A stretch of 12,133 nt of DNA, from contig CAXIUT010000107.1 of assembly GCA_964035545.1 (NCBI GenBank), positions 1 through 12,133 on the forward strand, in the 5' to 3' direction. Source of the stretch: Bugula neritina (taxonomy: Eukaryota > Animalia > Bryozoa). The position numbers and the translations under genes are program-made. This document shows positions 1 to 12,133 of this stretch, one piece after another. Within the stretch, counting starts at the first letter, position 1; every line of letters starts with the position of its first letter. The notes under the pieces were generated by a model. It searched no databases. It saw only the letters and a program-made list of their open reading frames with translations, and had not been told where the DNA came from.

Positions 1-90
1 CCCCAACCCCAACCCCAACCCCAACCCCAACCCCAACCCCAACCCCAACCCCAACCCCAACCCCAACCCCAACCCCAACCCCAACCCCAA
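1..90 (-). repeat. Left telomere, (CCCCAA)15; G-rich strand is the minus strand
   Basis: 15 perfect CCCCAA units at the window start; C4A2 is the oligohymenophorean (Tetrahymena-type) telomeric repeat. Confidence 0.98.
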
Positions 91-136
91 TAATTGTTTA
101 TATATTTATTGATAAAATGAATAGATAGAGAAAGGA

Positions 137-856
137 TCATATGGGTATAAAGATTCCAATAGCAAAGGCAATAAGGCATAGAAAGATGATGAGTTTGGGG
201 TAGATCCAATTTTAATCGGTTTTTTATTTTTATTTTTGTGAGATTAGTAGTTCTAGTCTGGATAGTTATTTTTTGTGCATTTATAGACTTTATTATACTT
301 TTTTTTATATTTCTGCTGGACATTTTCTTTATTAGTTTTCGATATCTGGTTCTTAGTTGTAGTTGACAAAGACATTGATGATTTTTTGGTTGGGAGGTTT
401 TTTTATTTTAGATATATTTTAATCATAAACTTTATCTGATTCTTTGTAGGGGTACCATATTATTTTGAATCTATCTGATACGAATTTAGCAAAAAAATTT
501 CTTTTCAACTGGTTTATCTACTAAATACCTATTATCTGGATACTTATTTATACGATTTTACCCGGAGGAATATCACCACTTGATGGATATACCTTATAAT
601 GTTGAGGATTGTTACATTGTATCGTAAATTTAACATAGTGATTTCTACTCTAGTTATGTAACTTTAATTATCGGTTTATTAGGTTGTAAGTCTCTCCCTA
701 GATATACTCAAATCTTATCTCATCTATTAATGAATTTTAACCCAAACTAAAATCTTTTTTATTAGTAAAGTAACTGTATTTGCTTGAGGTATCCATGCCG
801 AAAGATGATGGTTGGGAGAGAAGTCCTAATTTAGTTGGAGAATTTAGGTAGCTCAT
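137..856 (-). CDS. VAP-like (VAMP-associated) protein: MSP domain, coiled coil and C-terminal transmembrane anchor, 239 aa
   Basis: 720-nt frame from ATG 856 to TGA 137 with UAR=Glu. MSP-like segment LKLHNESRNHYVKFTIQCNNPQHYKVYPSSGDIPPGKIVEISIQ...SDRFKIIW, then a charged helix (EIEKKVEESLEMHKKELSRLELLISQKE) and a terminal hydrophobic tail KLIIFLCLIAFAIGIFIPI*. Confidence 0.8.
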
Positions 857-970
857 TATTGTTATTTAAATAGAATTATTTATGCTATCATCTGTTCATA
901 TTATGATCGAAGAGGCTATTGATGTATATAGCTAAATAGGATATTTTATTTTACTACAATTGTAATAGAT

Positions 971-2256
971 ATGATGATAAGTGATTAAATGGATAAAAAT
1001 AACGAACTAATTTTATTAATCAATATAATTAAAGAGGTGATCGTAATGAATAAGAGCAGGTTGAAATATTCCAATTTGGTTCAGGCAACAAGTACAATAA
1101 ACTCAACGATTGATACAATAGTAACCAAGGGAGGATAAAAGCTATATGATAAATATTTATCTACAAAGGTATCACAGCATATGAATAACTATTTTAGTTA
1201 AACAACTAATCAAATATTCAACCCTATTGCCAATCATAATCAATAACAACAAAGTCAATTGAACAAAGTGCATTTTTCTAATGTGAATAGAATAGATATA
1301 GCGAAGAAAGGCAAAAATAAAACTTATTCGAATATTAAAACAAGTGCTTTTTCAAATGGAAGAGGAAATAGTTCAATGTCTAAAAGAAGTAAATAGAAAT
1401 CAAAGAATATCAATAAAATATAATTATCTTTTTAAAATTTATAATCGAAAAAAGATAATTATGATTAAAATGCTTAATAAAATAAAATATGGGAAGATAA
1501 ACAATTAAGAGATGATAAAAGAAGATTGCAATAAGAATAAACTAAAAATCAATAATAAAAAGTAATTTTTATCATATTTAGGCTTTGAAAATAAGAAAAT
1601 AGTTGGAAGATCAATTTAAAACTTTATAATAAAATAATTAACCTATTCCTTTTGATCACTTAACTGGTAAACTTATCGATTAAGAATATTTGAAGTCGAA
1701 TAAAGTAAGAAATAGCAGTGATAAAAAGAATATCGTATTTATCAAGTATGAGACAAACAAAGCTAAATAGAATCATTATTCTAAACCACCAATTGAAAAA
1801 GACATCAAATAAGTAAGAAAAGTCTTAAGTTTTCAACGTGTTAAAAAATAGACAAGAGATATTGATGATTAGAGTTACAATAATAATGGAAGTCGTCAAA
1901 ATTCAACTATTCCTTACCTTGAAGTCTAAGATGGAGTTCAGCTGATCGAAGACGGAGGTGCTAGAACTAAATAAACCAGAAAAACAATTTCTGGAAGAGC
2001 GAGTTCAGCACTGACTCATCGAACATTTAAATCATATACGAAGTAGAAGATGGAATCGAGTCGTTATTTTAGGACGATAAATACTGCTACATCTGGAGGG
2101 AGGACTCGATATTTGTTGGCTCAGTAGTCTAAGAATAGTAGGTCTTTGACGAGAGATAGTTTGTTGTGGAATAATCGTAGAAGTTGTCGTAATCACAAGA
2201 TAAGTAAGAATAGTGAGATAATAGATAATTTTTTTGATTTTGACTAGTAGTTATGA
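971..2256 (+). CDS. Hypothetical protein, about 421 aa, join(971..1561,1582..2256); start could be 971, 974 or 989
   Basis: Two long TGA-free frames joined by a 20-nt GTA..TAG intron; ends ...IIDNFFDFDEEL* at TGA 2254-2256. Rich in K/N/S/E, with no family recognised. Confidence 0.72.
1562..1581 (+). other. 20-nt spliceosomal intron
   Basis: gtaatttttatcatatttag; removing it avoids the TGA just downstream and joins the two long frames. Confidence 0.85.
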
Positions 2257-2273
2257 ATTATATTCAATATATA

Positions 2274-3100
2274 TCAACAGTAAATGATTTATTTTTTTAA
2301 TAGTTTTTTTAGCATTAGTACTTATACTATATTAGCTATTAAAACTATTAGAAGTTATGTGTATGACCTGATAAATACATTTTATTGATTTAAGTAGTGT
2401 TATGCATGATGATTTTGTACTTATTACCAAATTTATAAACTATCCATGAATATTCTATCGGTTTAGTTTTTTATTTATCGCATCTTCTATAATGTTTTTA
2501 TGCCATCTTATACTTGATTTATATTCTTTTGACCACTGATAGGGGAAATACCCATACTAATATGAACATGTTTTGATGATTATTGTTATTTTTATTGATT
2601 TTTCCAGTTATACCTCACTCTTAGTTCATATAGCTATGAAAAGACCTAAGTTCTGGCTAATTTGAGGTGTTTGACTTTATATGCGAAGACAACTTAGTTA
2701 GTCTAGCAGTTGATAAGATAGATTTAGATACTTTGATTATCAAATTGATGGTTTTACTGTTAGTGTGTGATGGTTAATTAGATGATGAGATTTGAGACCT
2801 ATTTACCAACAAAGTAGAGAGATTGGCTCCATGAATTGTCTTTTTTCAATAAAATTTGTGCACTTAGCTAAGGATCAGGTGTAAAATCAAAGTAATTTTG
2901 TTTTGAATGCAGTTTTGAGTATTAGTTAAGTTATTATTCATATGTTTTTTACTAGATTTATGGAAGAACTATTGATGAAAATTTTTAATAGCTTTAGTCA
3001 AACCTTTTTTATAGATCTTTATTAAATAATAACTACCATAAAGTGCTGGATTACTATGAGTAATTGATAAGATTGCGAGTGTGTAAATTATTAGTTTCAT
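2274..3100 (-). CDS. p24/emp24 (TMED, GOLD-domain)-like type I membrane protein, 268 aa, complement(join(2274..3016,3037..3100))
   Basis: N-terminal signal peptide MKLIIYTLAILSITHS, a beta-rich lumenal region, a coiled coil (GIKTLEKMREIKNETDRIF), then a TM segment and short basic tail SYTELLIVLIANIVEVLMLKKLLKKEIIYC*. The call rests on architecture and tail pattern. Confidence 0.68.
3017..3036 (-). other. 20-nt spliceosomal intron
   Basis: gtagttattatttaataaag; joins the signal-peptide exon to the long downstream frame. Confidence 0.82.
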
Positions 3101-3170
3101 ACGTTTAGTTATAATGATGCTTAATTAATTTTAATTATTTAGGATGTAAGTCTTTATTTGGGTGTTTAAA

Positions 3171-3226
3171 CAGTGATAAATCGTGATAAATAGTGATAAA
3201 TAGTGATAAATAGTGATAAATGTGAT
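3171..3226. repeat. 10-bp tandem repeat (tagtgataaa), 5 copies plus a partial, in the divergent intergenic region
   Basis: cagtgataaa tcgtgataaa tagtgataaa tagtgataaa tagtgataaa tgtgat. Confidence 0.95.
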
Positions 3227-3245
3227 TTAAGTTATTAAAGAAAGT

Positions 3246-5710
3246 ATGAGATTAATAATAGTGAATGATGATGAGTTAATAATAACAGTAGTTTCGTTTA
3301 TAATTTTATTCTGGATGGATAGTTATGTAGAATAGTTAAAATTAAGGAGCATATCGGTTGATGTTGACAATGTTCGTCCTAGTTATAAAAGAAAATATGC
3401 TAAAAATACTGATTCATAAGTCATCCCCAAAAAACCATAACTTAAAATCATTAGACTTGATTAACAGATAATCAACGGTCCTGGCAATGCTAGTATAGTT
3501 AATTTGTAGTTTGGAGAAGATAGCATTCCTCTTTTCAAGAGAGGAAATCGTAAGGTCTATAAAAGACACCAAAAGGACGATAAAAGAAACACGATAGTCC
3601 CTAAAGAACTAATTAAAACTCGATACCACTAGTTATTTAAAGATAGTTTTGAATATTTTTGCAAAAACACTATGAATATTGGTCCATGCGCTAAGGCGAT
3701 GGTAGTCTAGGACGAAATAACTGACATATACGCTCGAAGAAAGATGATAAACATTTAAAAGTTAACTTATCCTTACCGATAGAAGAAGGAGAGCGGATCT
3801 AAGATGAAATACAGAACTTTGATGAACAAGACAACAAGAAATATAAATAAGATGTAGCAGTAGCATCCCAACAAGCGAAATAAATCTCAGTTATAGGAAT
3901 AGACTAACAGTTCTAATAAGAATTCAAAGAAGGGAGAGTGGGAGTTAGATTTTATACTGGATGGTGAGGCCAGGACGGATAAGAAGGGGTTGATTCCAAT
4001 TCGCAAGCCGAGCAATCGTAAGGATTATTTTGTGTTTGGGTTGGGAGATAGGAGTAATTTATCTGAAAGTATTTATGTGGTTAGATAGATAAGATTGAGT
4101 TGTATCGAGATTTGATGTGGAAAGTTAACTATAGCAATGGTTTGTATGTGTATACTCATAACAATTTGAGTTCTCCTTATAAATTTTATGTAGGATAGGG
4201 TAATAATAGCAATTTGGTTAAAGCTATTATGAGAAGACGGTTTTGGTGGGCGCAGGCTAGTTTAAAAAACTAGGAGGGAATTAATTTTTCATGGACTCAG
4301 TTGAAAGTTAATTCGTTTTATGGTGGGCAATAATCAGGATCTGTTCCTGAGTATTTTGTGATATAAAAGAATAGTTCTGATAATGGTTTGACTAAAATAA
4401 AGACGAGTTGTTAGGAGATAGATTGTAATAAGAAGTTATTTGGTCGAATTGATTATAAAATATGGCGTAAGCATTTATAAAAGAATTAAAGATCATAAAA
4501 AAAGATCAATTAAAATACATACCAGCGAAGAGTGAAGATGTACTAGAAAAAGAAAATAATAAAGATAGAGGATTCTAGACCGATTCGAGTCCACAACCAT
4601 CTTTAATCTAACTTTTATATTGGAAATAAAAAAGCTTTATATTACAATATGAAAAGATATATTGAGTTGAAAGGAGAAGATCCTTTCAAAATCTTACCTT
4701 TGACTTTTCATATTACTAAAGGAATATAAGATAGTGAATATTTCAAATTTTTGAGGTGTTACTAAGAGATCGAATAGTAGAGGAAGAATAATCGAAACAT
4801 AAGAAACATTTGGATAGTTAAACCTGGATAGAATACTAACCAAGGAAACGGTATAAGTGTTTGTTATGGCTTGGATGATATCAAGTTGCGATTACGAGGC
4901 CGATAGAAGAACAGAAATGGCAAATTACGTACCTTTATTCTCCAAAAATACATCTAGAATCCATTGCTTTATAATAAAAGAAAATTCGATTTACGACATT
5001 TCGTATTAATAACTTGTATAAATGGTATATTCAAGGCCTACTGGTACGAGTAGGGTTACGTGAGAACATCATCATCGTAGTTTAATTTAAAGCCATCGAA
5101 AGATACTCAAATTCATTTGACTAACGATGCGATACAGAAAGGTGCAAGTGATTATGGTAAATTTTAAAAAGGTAATAAATTGTCTTATGGGTAGTTGCAG
5201 AAATATCTCTAAAGTTATCAGAAGAAATGTAATTTTTATGAGTAGTTATTGCCTCAAATGAAATAGTATGCTTTATAGGCAATAAAATCGACTTATTTTA
5301 TTTTGGATGGAAATCGACGAAAACATAACTTTTAGTTACTGGGATTAGATTTTATGATAGATTAGTAGTTGTAGCCTTGGCTAATATAAATCAATACGAA
5401 TCCCTGCTTATAAATGAATTGTCCTCTTCTTAATAGACTGATTCCTTCTTTAATATAAAATACATTCAAAATATGTGTTGATCCTCTGTTTCCCCCTCCT
5501 TAAACATGGCCCACCAACAGAAAAATCTTCTTTGGAGATGACGCTGTTGCCTAAAATAGATTTTAAGTGATATTTGATTAAAGCAGTGATGGAAGGGAGG
5601 TAGAACTTGTGTTCAAAGGTCAACAGAATGTCGATAGCAGTATGGGTCGTATATAGGAAGATGAGGAGGTGTTTGATAATGATGGGGAAGTTGATTGGTA
5701 AAAATAATGA
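3246..5710 (+). CDS. Tubulin-tyrosine-ligase-like (TTLL) glycylase/glutamylase family protein, about 790-815 aa, join(3246 or 3315..4068,4089..5710)
   Basis: TTL-domain motifs with UAR=Glu: FYVGEGNNSNLVK..MRRRFWW, HNHLESNFYIGNKKALYYNMK, LPLTFHI, WIVKPGENTNQGNGI, LQKYIENPLLYNKRKFDLR, YEEGYVRTSS, IHLTNDAIQK, DYGKFEKGNKLS, FELLGLDFMID, PWLIEINTNPCLE. Ends at TGA 5708-5710. The start codon is uncertain. Confidence 0.93.
4069..4088 (+). other. 20-nt spliceosomal intron
   Basis: gtatttatgtggttagatag; links the upstream frame (which would otherwise stop at TGA 4113) to the TTL-domain frame. Confidence 0.78.
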
Positions 5711-5741
5711 TTATTTATATACTTATTTATGAGTATGGATA

Positions 5742-6965
5742 TCAGGGTAGGCTGAGAAGCATGTTAATTTTGTCAAGTTATTGTTGCTAGATCTATCTGA
5801 GGTTTCTTTTGGCGTCCATGCAGACTTCGTATTTCTTTATTTTACCGAAAAGGCATTGTTCTTTTCTGACTAAATCTGCAATCTTTCTTTATAGCTTATC
5901 TATGTGGCTTTAGTTTTGGATGATTTGTTCTTTGAGTAGACTTTTTTCTTCCTTGAATTGATGTTTTAGAAGTTGCATGGCTTCATTGCTTTGTTTATCA
6001 TGTTCTTCCATGAGAAGGTTCATTTATTTGATTGAATATTCTTTGACTTAGCATTCTTCTCTAAGTTTTTGCCACTTTCTTTATAAAGAATCTAAATAAG
6101 ATAATATTTACAATTGACTTATTTCATATGCTAGATTTAATTTTTTAGTATTCTAACTTGACATTTCTTTTATTTTTGCAAATGATCTATTTTTTATTAA
6201 CTTTAAAGAACCATTTCGTTGAGATAGACTTCGAGTTAGTTTATTTTTTATTTTAAACAGTCATTTTATCTTTTTAGTAATCTATTTTATTAATCTTTTT
6301 GCATGATGCCAGATTTTAGGATTTAATTTTATTCTAGTTGAGTTTATTTTGATTTTTTAGTTTATAATTTAAAGTGTTAAAAATTATGTACCAATTTATT
6401 ATATTAGATTTCAAATTATTCTTATCTTTATTGATATTTTTTTGTCAAAAGTTTTAATTTATTCATAAGTTGGTCATTTAAATTTTACATTTCTTCATAT
6501 TTTTGATGAGTAACAACTTCTTTTGATTTATACTGGCCATGTAAAAATGAATAAGATTCTTCAAGTTCTTGAATAGCTTTTTGAAGGTTCAAGTTTTATG
6601 ATTTATATTCATAATTTTGTTGTTTGAATGTTGTGGTCTATTGACAGGCATGAGTCAAGTTTTTACACTTATTTTCTAAATTATTGATTGTTTCTGAATA
6701 GATTAAGATATACTTTCTTTTTCTTTGATTTGCCAGTCTTTGCTTTTGAGATCTTTAAGCAAAACATCATATTTTCCATAAAGGTTTTCAATCTATATTT
6801 AATCTATATTACTTTTTATCTTTGAATTTTTAATCTACTCACATATTAACGTTCCATCTAGACTTCATAAATAATGGAATCGTCTTGTCCTTATCCAAAG
6901 GTAGCTCCTGTTTTTTCTTGCATCAGTTGTGACACTTTGATTTCATTCTCTGGTCTATCGAACAT
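5742..6965 (-). CDS. Coiled-coil hypothetical protein, 387 aa, three introns
   Basis: ATG 6965 (MFDRPENEIKVSQLMQEK...) to TGA 5742 after removing three 20-nt introns; E/K/L/Q-rich heptad-like sequence throughout. Confidence 0.8.
6092..6111 (-). other. 20-nt spliceosomal intron
   Basis: gtaaatattatcttatttag; restores the frame. Confidence 0.82.
6694..6713 (-). other. 20-nt spliceosomal intron
   Basis: gtatatcttaatctattcag; restores the frame. Confidence 0.85.
6793..6812 (-). other. 20-nt spliceosomal intron
   Basis: gtaatatagattaaatatag; restores the frame. Confidence 0.82.
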
Positions 6966-7054
6966 TGATGATTTTCTAAAAGAAAAGTATTATAAAATAT
7001 TCTAAAAAGGAATTTGATATAATATTTTTTATATTGAATTTATTTAATGGTTCA

Positions 7055-8916
7055 TCAGATGCCTACTCTGGTCTGGTAGGTGTTTTCTGTTACGAAATAG
7101 CAAAAGACTTTCTTTCCATCAAAATATTTTCCATTTAATCCGTCTTGTCCTTTCTTGGCTTATTAAGTTCCTGAGTATTTTATCCAAATATTTCCTTGGT
7201 TGTTCTTTTCCATGAAAATTCGTTAGATGACTCCGTACTCTTCTGCTTGCTTCTGAACCTATCTTTTAAGATCCTCGAAGAAAGCAGGAGTTGTGCCTTC
7301 CATCTTGAACATATTGGTCATAATTAGATAAGGAGTAGTCACTGTGGAAATAGGAGGTTTCATCAAGTTGGAATAACTTGGACCTGTACTACCTGATAAC
7401 TTTTATCTAAGAAGAGCTCTCGTACCAGCATTATGTATGAGATCTTCTGAAGGAGTAACATCTACTCCTTGTTTTGCAGTTACTATTTGAACTGTAATCT
7501 TTTGGTTTCCAACAACATTTAAACCGTTCATTTAACGAACTGCCAATTTAGCCTTCTCTGGGTCAGCATATTGAATGAAGGCATAACCTTTACACTTTCC
7601 TGTTTGAGGATCACGATGAATATCAACATATTAAATTTATCCAAAAGGTTAAAAGAGTTCCTTAAGATCTTTTTATGGCATTTCTTAAAGTTTTCCAACT
7701 AGTCCACTTACAAAAACTTTAGTTTGACGACGAAGTTGTTCTTGCTGTTGTTCAATTGGGTCAGCAGGTTTGATCACTCTCATTTGTCTATGATTATATA
7801 ATATGTACTTAGCGGCTGCTGCAGCTCTGTTCTTTTCAGCTTGAGAATGTTGTACTCTGAGACCCATGAACTGTCTACCTTTGAGATCGAAGGGAATTTC
7901 ACTCATTGTTAGGGCTGCTTGAACTGCATCAGAAGTATAGAACTAGACGTAGGCAACTCCTTTGCTTCTACCACTTCTGGCATCTCGGATGATTCGGATA
8001 TCTCTAATTTTTCCAACTTTAGTTTTGTTGAAGAAATTCCAAATATCTTTTTCTTTGGCTTTGAGAGGAAGACAGTAGACAAGAATGGTGAGATCTTATC
8101 TTTTTGCTTCTTCCATTTCTTTTTCTGAATTTAATAAAAATTACGTGCTTATTTGAATTTTTAAGTAGCTTATTTGATTTATCTTTATTTGTTATCAAGA
8201 ATGATTTTTTTTTAAAGTTCAGCATCAAGTTAATCAGCTCTAGTTGTATTTTCTCTTCTTACCCTTTATATTTCTCTTCTTTTCTAATAATAGGGATCTT
8301 TATCATCAATAACTTTATCTTTTCGATGTTTATAGTCTCGATCTCTATTTCCATCTCTTTGATTATTATCTCTGTAATGATCTCTATGACCATCTCTGTT
8401 ATTATCTCTGTTATTATCTCTGAAATCTCTATGTCCCCCTCTATCTCTATCATCTCTTCTATCGTCTCTTCGATCTCTGTCTCTGTCTCTCACTCTATCT
8501 CCATTGTCTCGATCTCGTCGATTGTCTCGTTAATATTTACGATCATAGTCTCTGTCATTGTCGTGATGGTGATGACGAGAATGTCCATTTTATCTTTAAT
8601 GATACTTTCTTTATCTTTCAGGGCTTTATCGAGATTTATGATGTTTTTTATGTTTTCTTTATTCTTTGGATCTGGAACGTTTTTTTTTATCTCGACTTCC
8701 GCTGCGTGAAGGCCTACCTAGTACCGATTATAAAAAATACATAGAAATTTTGTCAACCTAAAACAAAATATTGTGTGAGTAGGTACCTTTAATCTCTATG
8801 TTTTTTCTTTTTTTTGTGTGTGCTTTATCGATTTGCTTAATCTCTTCTGTGGGCGAGAAGATCGTCCTGAGTTACTTTTATCTTACCCTTGCTTTATCGA
8901 GGCGGGAATGGTCCAT
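7055..8916 (-). CDS. RBM39: RBM39/CAPER-like splicing factor (RS/RD region, 2 RRMs, C-terminal UHM), about 582 aa, complement(join(7055..8124,8145..8713,8787..8866,8887..8916))
   Basis: RS/RD-rich N-terminus; RRM1 with SGRSKGVAYVEFY followed by the RBM39/RBM23 signature VQHSQAEKNRAAAA; RRM2 LFEPFGEIEYVDIHRDPQTGKCKGYAFIQY; UHM-like YLIMTNMF...FFEDLKREV...LNGKYFDGKKV. Ends with tandem TGA TGA. Confidence 0.92.
8125..8144 (-). other. 20-nt spliceosomal intron
   Basis: gtaatttttattaaattcag; joins the RD-rich frame to the RRM1 frame. Confidence 0.9.
8330..8530 (-). repeat. Low-complexity Arg-Asp (AGAGAT/AGAGAC-like) coding repeats within the RBM39-like gene
   Basis: Recurrent atctct/gtctct on the + strand, translating as RDRDRDRRDDRRDDRDR...RDNNRDNNRD; boundaries are approximate. 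Confidence 0.85.
8714..8786 (-). other. Atypical 73-nt intron of the RBM39-like gene
   Basis: gtacctac...ggtactaggtag. This AT-rich block interrupts KKHRDER|PSRSGSRD, contains an in-frame TGA (8755-8753), and has a GTA donor and an acceptor with the -6 A seen in all other introns. Confidence 0.7.
8867..8886 (-). other. 20-nt spliceosomal intron
   Basis: gtaagataaaagtaactcag after MDHSRLDKAR; puts the ATG in frame with THKKKKKHRDER. Confidence 0.8.
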
Positions 8917-9234
8917 AATTGTTGCAATCTATTATAAAAATAATAAAAATTGATCTCAATCCAAAATATTAATTTTCTGGTTAATATTGGTATCGGGGTT
9001 AGTAGTTTATCTTCTAAAGAATCTTGGATAATCGATTGAAAAACTTTTTTTATGAATCAAATCTAAAAACATAAAGATTTGGAGTTTATTTTTACAGAAA
9101 AAGGAATAATCAGATTTTTTTTCCTTAATATATCTGTTATTTTTTAAATTATAAGCTTTTGATAAAGAGGATGACATAGTTTATTGACAATTTAGTCTTT
9201 TACTAAGAGAGTTTTTTTGTATATTGTTAATTAA

Positions 9235-9699
9235 ATGAGTGAGAGTACTTAGAATAAGAGCATCATTTAAAGAGACCTAAAAAAGAGAAAGATATGTCGA
9301 ATATCGGGGTTGGGGTTGGGGTTTGGGTTGGGGTTTGGGGTTGGGGTTGGGGTTGGGGTTGGGGTTGGGGTTGGGAGTGTGATTATGCCTTCCATCTATA
9401 CCGAATAGTTTGAGAGTTGTGATAGTCCGATTTATTGTGGAACGATTACGAGTAAAACTAATCCTACTCTCTCCCTTATGGAGCCCACTCCCCAAGATTC
9501 CTTTGATTTCTCTGAAGATCTCCAGGAAATGACTCTGTAACATAATTTTTTTGATTTGCAAGAGGATGATGGGTAGAGGCAGTTTGACTAAAAGGAAGAT
9601 TAAGGCCATACTTAATGGTCTAATTTACCTTTGAACGAAGATTTTGTGGCTGCCTAGATGGATGGATTGACCCTAAACAATCTCTCTAAATAGTACTGA
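9235..9699 (+). CDS. Hypothetical acidic protein (154 aa as assembled) interrupted in frame by a telomeric tract
   Basis: ATG 9235 after AT-rich sequence: MSESTENKSIIERDLKKRKICRIS-[GLGLGFGLGFGVGVGV...G]-SVIMPSIYTEEFESCDSPIYC...NNLSKEY* (TGA 9697-9699). The 9376-9699 part looks coding; continuity across the tract is uncertain. Confidence 0.5.
9306..9375 (+). repeat. Internal telomeric tract 1 (70 bp, TTGGGG with TTTGGG and TTTGGGG variants)
   Basis: ggggttggggttggggtttgggttggggtttggggttgggg...ttggg, in the same orientation as the right telomere. Confidence 0.97.
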
Positions 9700-9747: not shown

Positions 9748-9800
9748 TTGGGGTTGGGGTTGGGGTTGGGGTTGGGGTTGGGGTTGGGGTTGGGGTTGGG
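9748..9800 (+). repeat. Internal telomeric tract 2 (53 bp, perfect TTGGGG)
   Basis: (ttgggg)8 ttggg, in the same orientation as the right telomere. Confidence 0.97.
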
Positions 9801-12002: not shown

Positions 12003-12133
12003 GGGGTTGGGGTTGGGGTTGGGGTTGGGGTTGGGGTTGGGGTTGGGGTTGGGGTTGGGGTTGGGTTGGGGTTGGGGTTGGGGTTGGGGTTGGGTTGGGG
12101 TTGGGGTTGGGTTGGGTTGGGGTTGGGGTTGGG
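12003..12133 (+). repeat. Right telomere, (TTGGGG)n with some TTGGG units distally
   Basis: G4T2 repeats run to the window end. Confidence 0.98.

Follow-up and report, generated by a model that had tools for sequence, protein, structure and literature searches.

Within an RBM39-like gene on the minus strand of the window (the whole stretch of DNA analysed, 12,133 nt), positions 8714-8786 are a genuine spliceosomal GT-AG intron of 73 nt. Comparison across orthologues indicates that the core of this intron is under strong purifying selection. We propose, at roughly even odds (about 0.5), that 8714-8786 is a structured cis-regulatory splicing module, probably mediating RBM39 feedback via use of the distal AG versus retention or use of a proximal AG. 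The intron is ~3.5 times the normal 20-nt length, we suggest because it houses a conserved RNA element. To our knowledge, few intron-length regimes are as rigid as that of peritrich ciliates, which makes a deeply conserved exception a natural experiment. Alternative splicing in ciliates is mostly viewed as noise; if the proposal is true, this would be the first candidate in ciliates for a conserved regulatory intron and for splicing-factor feedback.

The gene (7055-8916, minus strand) runs from an ATG at 8916 to a TGA at 7057-7055 and comprises 575 codons. Its translated model consists, from the N to the C terminus, of an RS/RD-rich part, RRM1, RRM2 and a candidate UHM-like end. UAR encodes Glu in this gene: TAA and TAG are both read as Glu, and a TAG aligns with the Glu of GIAYVEF. 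Given the many UAR codons, profile comparisons with the SF-CC1 family were made with stop-free pieces only. TIGR01622 (SF-CC1) was the top match, in collinear order, for four protein pieces (profile positions 119-166, 168-206 and 249-278 among them). The C-terminal piece matched positions 467-495 of 500 weakly (E = 0.032), with U2AF_lg scoring about equally. The TIGR01622 scores total ~123 bits over ~160 of the 575 residues, from pieces scored separately, and the curated cut-off of 231.65 bits applies to the whole protein. Pfam RRM_1 matches both RRM pieces. The best PDB matches of the RRM1 piece are RBM23 and RBM39, the RRM2 piece has a higher PDB score for PUF60 than for RBM39, and the piece after RRM2 has no useful PDB match. 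By these sequence comparisons, the gene is a member of the SF-CC1/RBM39 (CAPER) family. The 73-nt intron lies in its RS-coding 5' part. Ahead of the intron, orthologues share a conserved N-terminal coding sequence, which places the intron inside the CDS.

Splicing was seen in one cDNA-like contig from run X3, the sole RNA contig across the site: 8787 is followed directly by 8713, and the stretch missing between them is precisely 73 nt long with GT..AG ends. We treat run X3 as cDNA-like because the 20- and 21-nt introns of the gene are missing from its contigs. The orthologous introns likewise point to excision as one phase-2 unit. DNA-like contigs of runs X1 and X2 retain 8714-8786, and run X4 contains intron-spanning words, which fit DNA or pre-mRNA alike. 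The intron fits the genome's own splicing signals, with a GTA donor (8786-8784), an AG (8715-8714) and an A at -6 (8719). The initial annotation had argued that this block is removed as a 73-nt intron, and the X3 junction bears this out. Its minus-strand coordinates (donor 8786, acceptor 8714, the -6 A, an in-frame TGA, an internal GTA at 8740 and AGs ending at 8758 and 8718) are correct, as are the sub-lengths that it derived from them (29, 17, 23 and 27 nt) and the insertion of LTKFLCR by an in-frame route. It had also interpreted the block as an AS-NMD element. The intron is indeed conserved and its non-productive routes give premature stops, but the contigs, which drop rare forms, hold no PTC isoform: across the site there is one low-depth cDNA-like contig with the productive junction only.

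The other introns of the gene are tiny. Intron 1 (8867-8886; 20 nt, phase 0) is predicted from its GTA..A at -6..AG motif and the reading frame, and the X3 contig stops at ~8818; orthologues carry a 20-23-nt intron at this place. Intron 3 (8125-8144; 20 nt, phase 1) is absent from the cDNA-like X3 and X5 contigs, and its counterparts are 20-22 nt long and unconserved in sequence. Intron 4 (7788-7808; 21 nt, phase 2) is supported by gaps of 41 nt (20 + 21) in the X3 contig and by the boundary of an X5 piece at 7809. The 73-nt intron had been described as the only one that is not 20 nt long; it is real, but the RNA-supported 21-nt intron at 7808-7788 makes that description too strict. Among orthologues the tiny introns span 20-23 nt and are unconserved, and one has been lost in lineage L001 and one in L013. 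We considered whether intron 1 and the long intron together always make a multiple of three; this is true at four loci and fails in L001, L003, L004 and L005. Narrow intron-length distributions have been described for three peritrichs (PMC13685798), and gene callers restricted to ~20-nt introns would mis-annotate the RBM39 gene.

Twelve distinct peritrich-like sequences with upstream sequence, from metagenomes, served as orthologues. All twelve carry a long phase-2 intron of 68-88 nt at the same site, where ordinary introns are 20-23 nt; the alignment of orthologues that had been suggested as a check thus yields a conserved long intron. The A at -6 is kept in 11 of the 12, and L013 has an A at -7. 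The long intron has an interior identity of 0.71-0.74, rising to 0.88-0.93 in its hairpin part, which is comparable to codon position 2 of the RRMs (0.88). For reference, identity is 0.38-0.44 in tiny-intron interiors and 0.47-0.51 at codon position 3. The first 13 interior nucleotides of the long intron sit at this neutral level (0.42-0.50). The conserved position, the unusual length and the hairpin, shared by a dozen related species, argue for a functional, probably regulatory, splicing element.

Following the donor, a spacer at intron positions 4-17 (8770-8783, minus strand) is free in sequence (identity 0.42-0.50), and within it the base at intron position 15 is an invariant A (8772; column A25, alignment A2). 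The distance from donor to hairpin is constant, at 17-20 nt, in all orthologues. The hairpin itself pairs 8769-8762 with 8754-8747 over 8 bp. Its left arm, AUUUUGUU (8762-8769), includes UUUG at 8767-8764. The loop, UUAGGUU (8755-8761), has an internal AG at 8759-8758. The in-frame TGA begins with U in the loop and continues with G and A in the right arm, GACAAAAU (8747-8754). Across orthologues the stems are 7-11 bp and the loops 3-18 nt, always in the same place. The loop AGGU is retained in nine of the ten orthologues of the AT-rich clade; it is absent in L008, which despite this keeps and even lengthens the hairpin.

The hairpin was resolved by a covariance model. In the alignment fitted to that model, pairing is complete (80 of 80 cells), two of the pairs have changed on both sides, and the arms persist around loops that range from 5 to 18 nt. 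Covariation is modest and comes mainly from L013, in which a G-C pair has become U-A and a U-G pair A-U; L008 and L012 show U-G to U-A. Only 4 of 500 shuffles attain the observed pairing, and slid controls pair at 50-63%. In a search of 73 kb of related loci the covariance model matched this intron only, and only on the sense strand. The hairpin is AU-rich, and single-sequence folding is not significant (z = -0.07 in this gene) except in L008, at -3.6. A shuffle test for a correctly placed stem gave P = 0.006-0.05 in AT-rich lineages. The L014-L016 clade has a differing hairpin sequence that is not significant alone (P ~0.2 for both L014 and L016). RNAalifold found no structure in a 10-sequence MAFFT alignment, which we attribute to misalignment of the arms around loop indels.

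The tail after the hairpin is 31-36 nt long and ends in the conserved UACUAGGUAG (8714-8723), which contains the -6 A at 8719 and two AGs, a tandem one at 8718 and, at 8714, the one that is used. RNAalifold, run on an 8-sequence alignment, proposes a weak second stem, with CUAUGUA (8738-8744), which includes the internal GTA, as the candidate left arm. In this predicted fold the last 7 nt of UACUAGGUAG may form the right arm, and the stem would then mask the 3' splice site.

How might such an intron regulate its own gene? We envisage that the loop would display UAG|GU as a decoy or proximal 3' splice site. In the folded state the proximal AG would be hidden, the distal AG at 8714 used and productive mRNA made. 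In an opened or protein-bound state the intron would be retained or cut at the proximal AG at 8758, and either product would carry a premature stop leading to decay or to a truncated protein. The tail may fold back on itself and so mask the real 3' splice site. The most likely effector would be RBM39 itself, giving negative feedback. Retention of the 73-nt intron in this gene brings in the TGA at 8755-8753, and premature stops result from the non-productive routes in all 12 orthologues; five of the retained pieces have a length divisible by three, and each of these contains an in-frame TGA.

The initial annotation had invoked autoregulation of human RBM39 through poison isoforms, and PMC10477243 confirms autoregulation through a poison exon. 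That exon, 2b, sits at the gene start; RRM2 of the human protein binds N(G/U)NUUUG immediately 5' of this exon's AG, and RRM1 binds stem-loops, an inhibitory stem-loop having been described (PMC10477243). By analogy, we tentatively suggest, while regarding it as the less probable outcome, that the hairpin, UUUG and AG form an RBM39-binding autoregulatory device like the human 3'-splice-site module, either ancient or convergent, which would double as a length adaptor for a spliceosome with a ~20-nt ruler. The 7-mer here, UAUUUUG, mismatches the human motif at position 2, and a U-rich sequence will often contain UUUG by chance. If the suggestion is true, RBM39 feedback by unproductive 3'-splice-site choice either predates the ciliate-animal split or was reinvented convergently, and it becomes possible to test how far back in eukaryotes autoregulation of RBM39 reaches.

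The same hairpin could also belong to a constitutive structured intron, a reading that we consider possible but rather doubtful. [quoted passage not shown] The geometry agrees with this: the hairpin begins 17-20 nt from the donor in every orthologue, about where a normal intron ends, and if stem 2 forms, the unpaired spacer and linker together measure 19-23 nt in the close clade and in L008. That sum lies in the length range of tiny introns and so fits an adaptor, and in yeast, zipper and downstream stems do such a job (PMC12350175). However, stem 2 is weak. Most species have a central G.G mismatch (replaced by C-G in L005 and A-U in L008, with no clear covariation), and the stem was not found in L013. 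Adaptation to length also leaves unexplained why a long intron has persisted where its neighbours are minimal and tiny introns come and go, and why the loop AGGU and the tail are conserved beyond pairing. A regulatory module with a proximal AG remains the reading that we prefer.

We regard as unlikely the original form of the proposal, in which the internal donor at 8740 (which leaves the TGA in place and gives a 27-nt intron) or a 17-nt microexon at 8757-8741 makes poison isoforms and intron length acts as the sensor. The sites are present at the given coordinates, and a homologous GTA occurs in seven of ten sequences and the AG in nine of ten. In a single sequence, however, an internal GTA, an AG and an in-frame TGA occur together in 21% of composition-matched shuffles, which is chance level, so that they become meaningful only through orthologue comparison. 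There the model fares poorly. L005, L008 and L012 do not have the GTA, and L008 has also lost the microexon acceptor. As a cassette, the microexon is 17, 18 or 19 nt long depending on the species, and therefore shifts the frame in some and is in frame without a stop in others, neither consistently poisonous nor coding. The noted TGA straddles the loop-stem junction; in L008, L012 and L013 substitutions that maintain the pairing have removed it, and in L004 a change in the loop has done so. The sole RNA contig lacks all 73 nt. For length as a sensor there is no evidence; the conserved feature is the RNA hairpin. Recursive splicing through AG|GU was also considered and is unlikely, as most species would then have to use GUU as the donor and GTA looks invariant in the genome.

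We see little likelihood that the conserved core has some other role, as the source of a small stable RNA or as a site that boosts expression or export. Strong conservation specific to the sense strand is compatible with such a role, and the G-U pairs could not pair on the opposite strand. Against it, there is no match to an Rfam family, C/D and H/ACA boxes are absent, the element is only ~55 nt with a single short hairpin, and it occurs in this gene alone among the 73 kb of related loci. Finally, an ordinary intron that is long by accident and functionless is very improbable: it would account for internal motifs at chance level in one sequence, but is already contradicted by conservation far above that of synonymous sites and tiny introns in 12 lineages.

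The proposed module offers a compact 73-nt, one-hairpin system in which to ask how a tiny-intron spliceosome measures length and picks its 3' splice site, and it may be set beside several known systems. Genes for SR proteins and other splicing factors have ultraconserved poison exons and undergo unproductive splicing. As in SR-type poison exons, the non-coding piece here is at least as conserved as the surrounding coding sequence and the alternatives all end in a premature stop; unlike those exons, it stands in a setting of tiny introns with TGA as the sole stop codon, and its conservation is documented among peritrich-like ciliates only. A second parallel is the rule that retention of tiny ciliate introns introduces a PTC (Jaillon et al. 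2008, as cited in PMC13685798). Here too retention leads to a premature stop, and versions with a length divisible by three contain in-frame TGAs. The rule, however, concerns error control in bulk constitutive introns and predicts neither sequence conservation nor great length.

Yeast has structured introns with zipper stems or downstream stems, and intron structures exert autogenous control there (PMC12350175). These introns resemble the present case in having a conserved stem in an unusually long intron that could shorten the distance between signals and hide a cryptic AG. Yeast introns are 300-500 nt long, whereas here an 8-bp stem lies within 73 nt and its role is predicted from sequence. 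The closest counterpart is poison exon 2b of human RBM39 (Campagne et al. 2023, PMC10477243). The human element is a cassette exon within kilobase introns, whereas that of the ciliate is an intron, 73 nt long where the norm of the genome is 20 nt; the ciliate UUUG sits in the stem, and its 7-mer only partly fits N(G/U)NUUUG. The two nevertheless belong to the same family, each has its element at the beginning of the gene, within or ahead of the RS-coding part, and they share a UUUG a few bases upstream of an AG, a stem-loop that sequesters (in the ciliate, by prediction) splicing signals, and a PTC in the non-productive products.

The long intron in the RBM39 gene of this tiny-intron ciliate (minus strand, 8786-8714) is real, deeply conserved, and structured. 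We compared contigs of four public sequencing runs over window positions 3400-9300, at a level that neither shows nor excludes rare isoforms. Contigs of X1 and X2 are DNA-like and unspliced; in the cDNA-like runs X3 and X5, the 20-nt and 21-nt introns are absent (gaps of 20 and 41). The sole X3 contig across the long intron joins 8787 to 8713 and omits precisely 73 nt, bounded by GT and AG; 8714-8786 is thus a real intron excised as a single unit, as the initial annotation expected of a productive mRNA. Introns of the gene are thus 20 (predicted; 8886-8867), 73, 20 (8144-8125), and 21 nt (7808-7788) long on the minus strand, and since the last is RNA-supported, the 73-nt block is not, as first described, the only non-20-nt intron. 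In a second run search, intron-only words were present in X4 (from the same study as X3; its DNA or cDNA kind is not recorded) and in many marine and algal metagenome runs, which fits a widespread organism and conservation of the intron core.

The window is ciliate macronuclear DNA. Telomeric repeats occupy its start (C4A2, 1-90) and three internal stretches (G4T2, 9306-9370, 9748-9795, and 12003-12089). Positions 1-9370 resemble a complete minichromosome of ~9.4 kb (C4A2 ... G4T2), followed by two further G4T2-ended pieces; the extra internal G4T2 ends could reflect alternative telomere addition, concatenation of ends, or chimeric assembly. The gene runs on the minus strand from an ATG at 8916 to a TGA at 7057-7055. 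Its RRM1 reads GVAYV-TAG-F, versus GIAYVEF in RBM39; because TAG sits at the Glu of this motif, TAG and TAA encode Glu (peritrich code), with TGA as sole stop. As the gene contains many UAR codons, protein searches used stop-free pieces only. TIGR01622 (SF-CC1, RBM39/CAPER family) was the best family for four pieces, in collinear order, and two pieces matched Pfam RRM_1. Among solved structures, RBM23 and RBM39 are closest to RRM1; for the RRM2 piece alone, PUF60 outscores RBM39 (PDB). Membership in the RBM39 family, judged from these stop-free pieces, is well supported.

The conserved motif TTTATAATAGATT (8925-8940), ~10-25 nt upstream of the ATG, is a candidate element of the core promoter or transcription start. 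The window shares it with every AT-rich-clade metagenome locus for which upstream sequence was printed (L001, L003, L004, L005, L007-L009, L012, and L013), with slight variation in L004, L008, and L013; the printed stretches of L014 and L016 stop short of the start codon. X2 carries a 6-nt insertion (TCTCTG, plus strand) at 8473 in the RD-repeat coding region, an in-frame two-codon length polymorphism. Many 1-2-nt indels relative to X1 and X2 contigs occur in the AT-rich non-coding stretch between gene and telomere (8973-9276) and may be assembly homopolymer errors or strain differences. At 5000-5150, one X1 contig skips 149 nt (ends TC..GT, shorter side 25 nt), perhaps because the allele carries a deletion, an element was excised, or the contig derives from a paralogue.

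Scanning metagenome contigs with a 50-residue RRM1 piece yielded 22 loci (51-92% identity). A long intron occupies the same phase-2 site, between ...KKKH(K/R)D(D/E)R and (P/R)SRS..., in all 14 peritrich-like loci with enough upstream sequence, giving 12 distinct sequences with the window. It measures 73 nt in the window, 74 in L005 and L007, 75 in L009, 76 in L001 and L008, 77 in L003, 78 in L004, 82 in L013, 88 in L012, and 68 in both L014 and L016. Ordinary introns of the orthologues are 20-23 nt, freely variable in sequence, and sometimes absent (intron 4 from L001, intron 3 from L013); the long intron is never missing among the 12. Ordinary introns thus turn over, whereas the long one persists. 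No intron was found in the RS-coding region of two more distant ciliate-like loci (L017 and L019).

Identity, given for all pairs and for window versus others, is 0.38 and 0.44 in tiny-intron interiors and 0.47 and 0.51 at third codon positions of the RRM region; first and second codon positions give 0.79 and 0.79, and 0.88 and 0.89. The long-intron interior scores 0.71 and 0.74, its positions 17-40 score 0.88 and 0.93, and its positions 4-16 score 0.50 and 0.42. By these values synonymous sites are saturated, yet constraint on the intron core equals that on second codon positions; the sequence of positions 4-16 is neutral.

The conserved element is a hairpin. Intron positions 18-25 (AUUUUGUU, 8769-8762) pair with 33-40 (GACAAAAU, 8754-8747) around the loop UUAGGUU, and every orthologue shares the layout: a 17-20-nt spacer, a 7-11-bp stem, a 3-18-nt loop, and a 31-36-nt tail. 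In L013, AUUUUUUAUU pairs with GAUAAAAAAU; the L008 stem measures 11 bp around a 5-nt loop, and in L012 the arms are preserved and the loop is 18 nt long. At the same place, the GC-richer L014 and L016 instead pair GGCUUC with GAAGCU. A four-sequence covariance model matched this intron alone, on the sense strand alone, across 73 kb (window and loci). On the alignment fitted to this model, 80 of 80 cells are paired, with double changes at two pairs and U-G to U-A at one, the covariation coming mostly from L013. Observed pairing was reached by 4 of 500 shuffles, and slid controls were 50-63% paired. Rich in A and U, the stems have little thermodynamic stability.

RNAalifold (8 sequences) predicted a second stem, CUAUGUA (8744-8738) with UAGGUAG (8720-8714), which, if formed, would mask the 3' splice site. 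It is weak and lacks clear covariation; most species carry a G.G mismatch at its center, where L005 has C-G and L008 has A-U. It was not found in L013. With both stems formed, the unpaired donor-acceptor path in L008 and the close clade would measure 19-23 nt, the normal intron length there; this arithmetic is suggestive, no more. The main rival explanation is that the fold is purely a structural length adaptor, for which the yeast zipper and downstream stems provide precedent (PMC12350175). The constant spacer favors such an adaptor, which we nevertheless consider unlikely.

The initial annotation proposed a poison-splicing switch using sites inside the intron. Its coordinates are all correct (donor 8786; acceptor 8714 and its -6 A; TGA 8755-8753, in frame with the intron kept; GTA 8740; AGs ending 8758 and 8718), as is its arithmetic of a 27-nt intron from 8740 or a 17-nt microexon between 29-nt and 23-nt introns. 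Internal GTA, AG, and in-frame TGA co-occur in 21% of composition-matched shuffles and in one sequence mean little. The GTA at 8740 is missing in L005, L008, and L012. The microexon, 17, 18, or 19 nt depending on species, would shift frame in some and insert in frame in others, and was rejected. The AG at 8758 lies in the hairpin loop, and 9 of 10 sequences retain AGGU there. The TGA straddles the loop-stem junction (U32 in the loop, G33 and A34 in the right arm) and is lost via pairing-preserving changes in L008, L012, and L013 and via a loop change in L004. Every non-productive route, whether full retention or use of the proximal AG (8758), nevertheless leads to a premature stop in each of the 12 sequences; where the retained length is divisible by three (five cases), an in-frame TGA is always present, though not the same TGA across lineages. 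The general idea of a switch is plausible and gains comparative support; the specific splice routes are not supported.

Conservation of the N-terminal coding sequence ahead of the intron makes it unlikely that translation starts downstream. Introns 1 and 2 sum to 93 nt (20 + 73) in the window, and the fully unspliced reading (8916-8145, minus strand) lacks TGA, so retaining the two together would preserve the frame; the in-frame sum recurs in L012, L013, and L014, fails in L001, L003, L004, and L005, and is probably coincidence.

Length kept against a strong genome-wide trend, the conserved hairpin and loop, the conserved tail, and the premature stop in every alternative argue for a function requiring extra RNA in this one intron. 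We favor, at a probability of about 0.5, a regulatory switch controlling splice-site choice. In the folded state the proximal AG would be concealed and splicing would use the distal AG (8714); with the RNA unfolded or occupied by protein, retention or splicing to the proximal AG would make the transcript unproductive. If such a switch operates, its effector is probably RBM39 itself, a combined reading somewhat less likely than the switch alone.

Splicing-factor feedback elements and structured introns are known kinds. A close functional model is human RBM39, which promotes use of a poison exon located at its gene's start; its RRM2 binds N(G/U)NUUUG just upstream of the poison-exon AG, its RRM1 binds stem-loops, and an inhibitory stem-loop sequesters a splice site (PMC10477243). 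Just after the hairpin, L014 (1127-1135) and L016 (572-580) carry UUCUUUG, a full match to this RRM2 motif and near the human site CUCUUUG (PMC10477243), which may be chance in U-rich sequence. The ciliate element shares with the human module a stem-loop and a UUUG, here four bases before the conserved AG, but the window 7-mer, UAUUUUG, misses motif position 2, and UUUG is frequent by chance.
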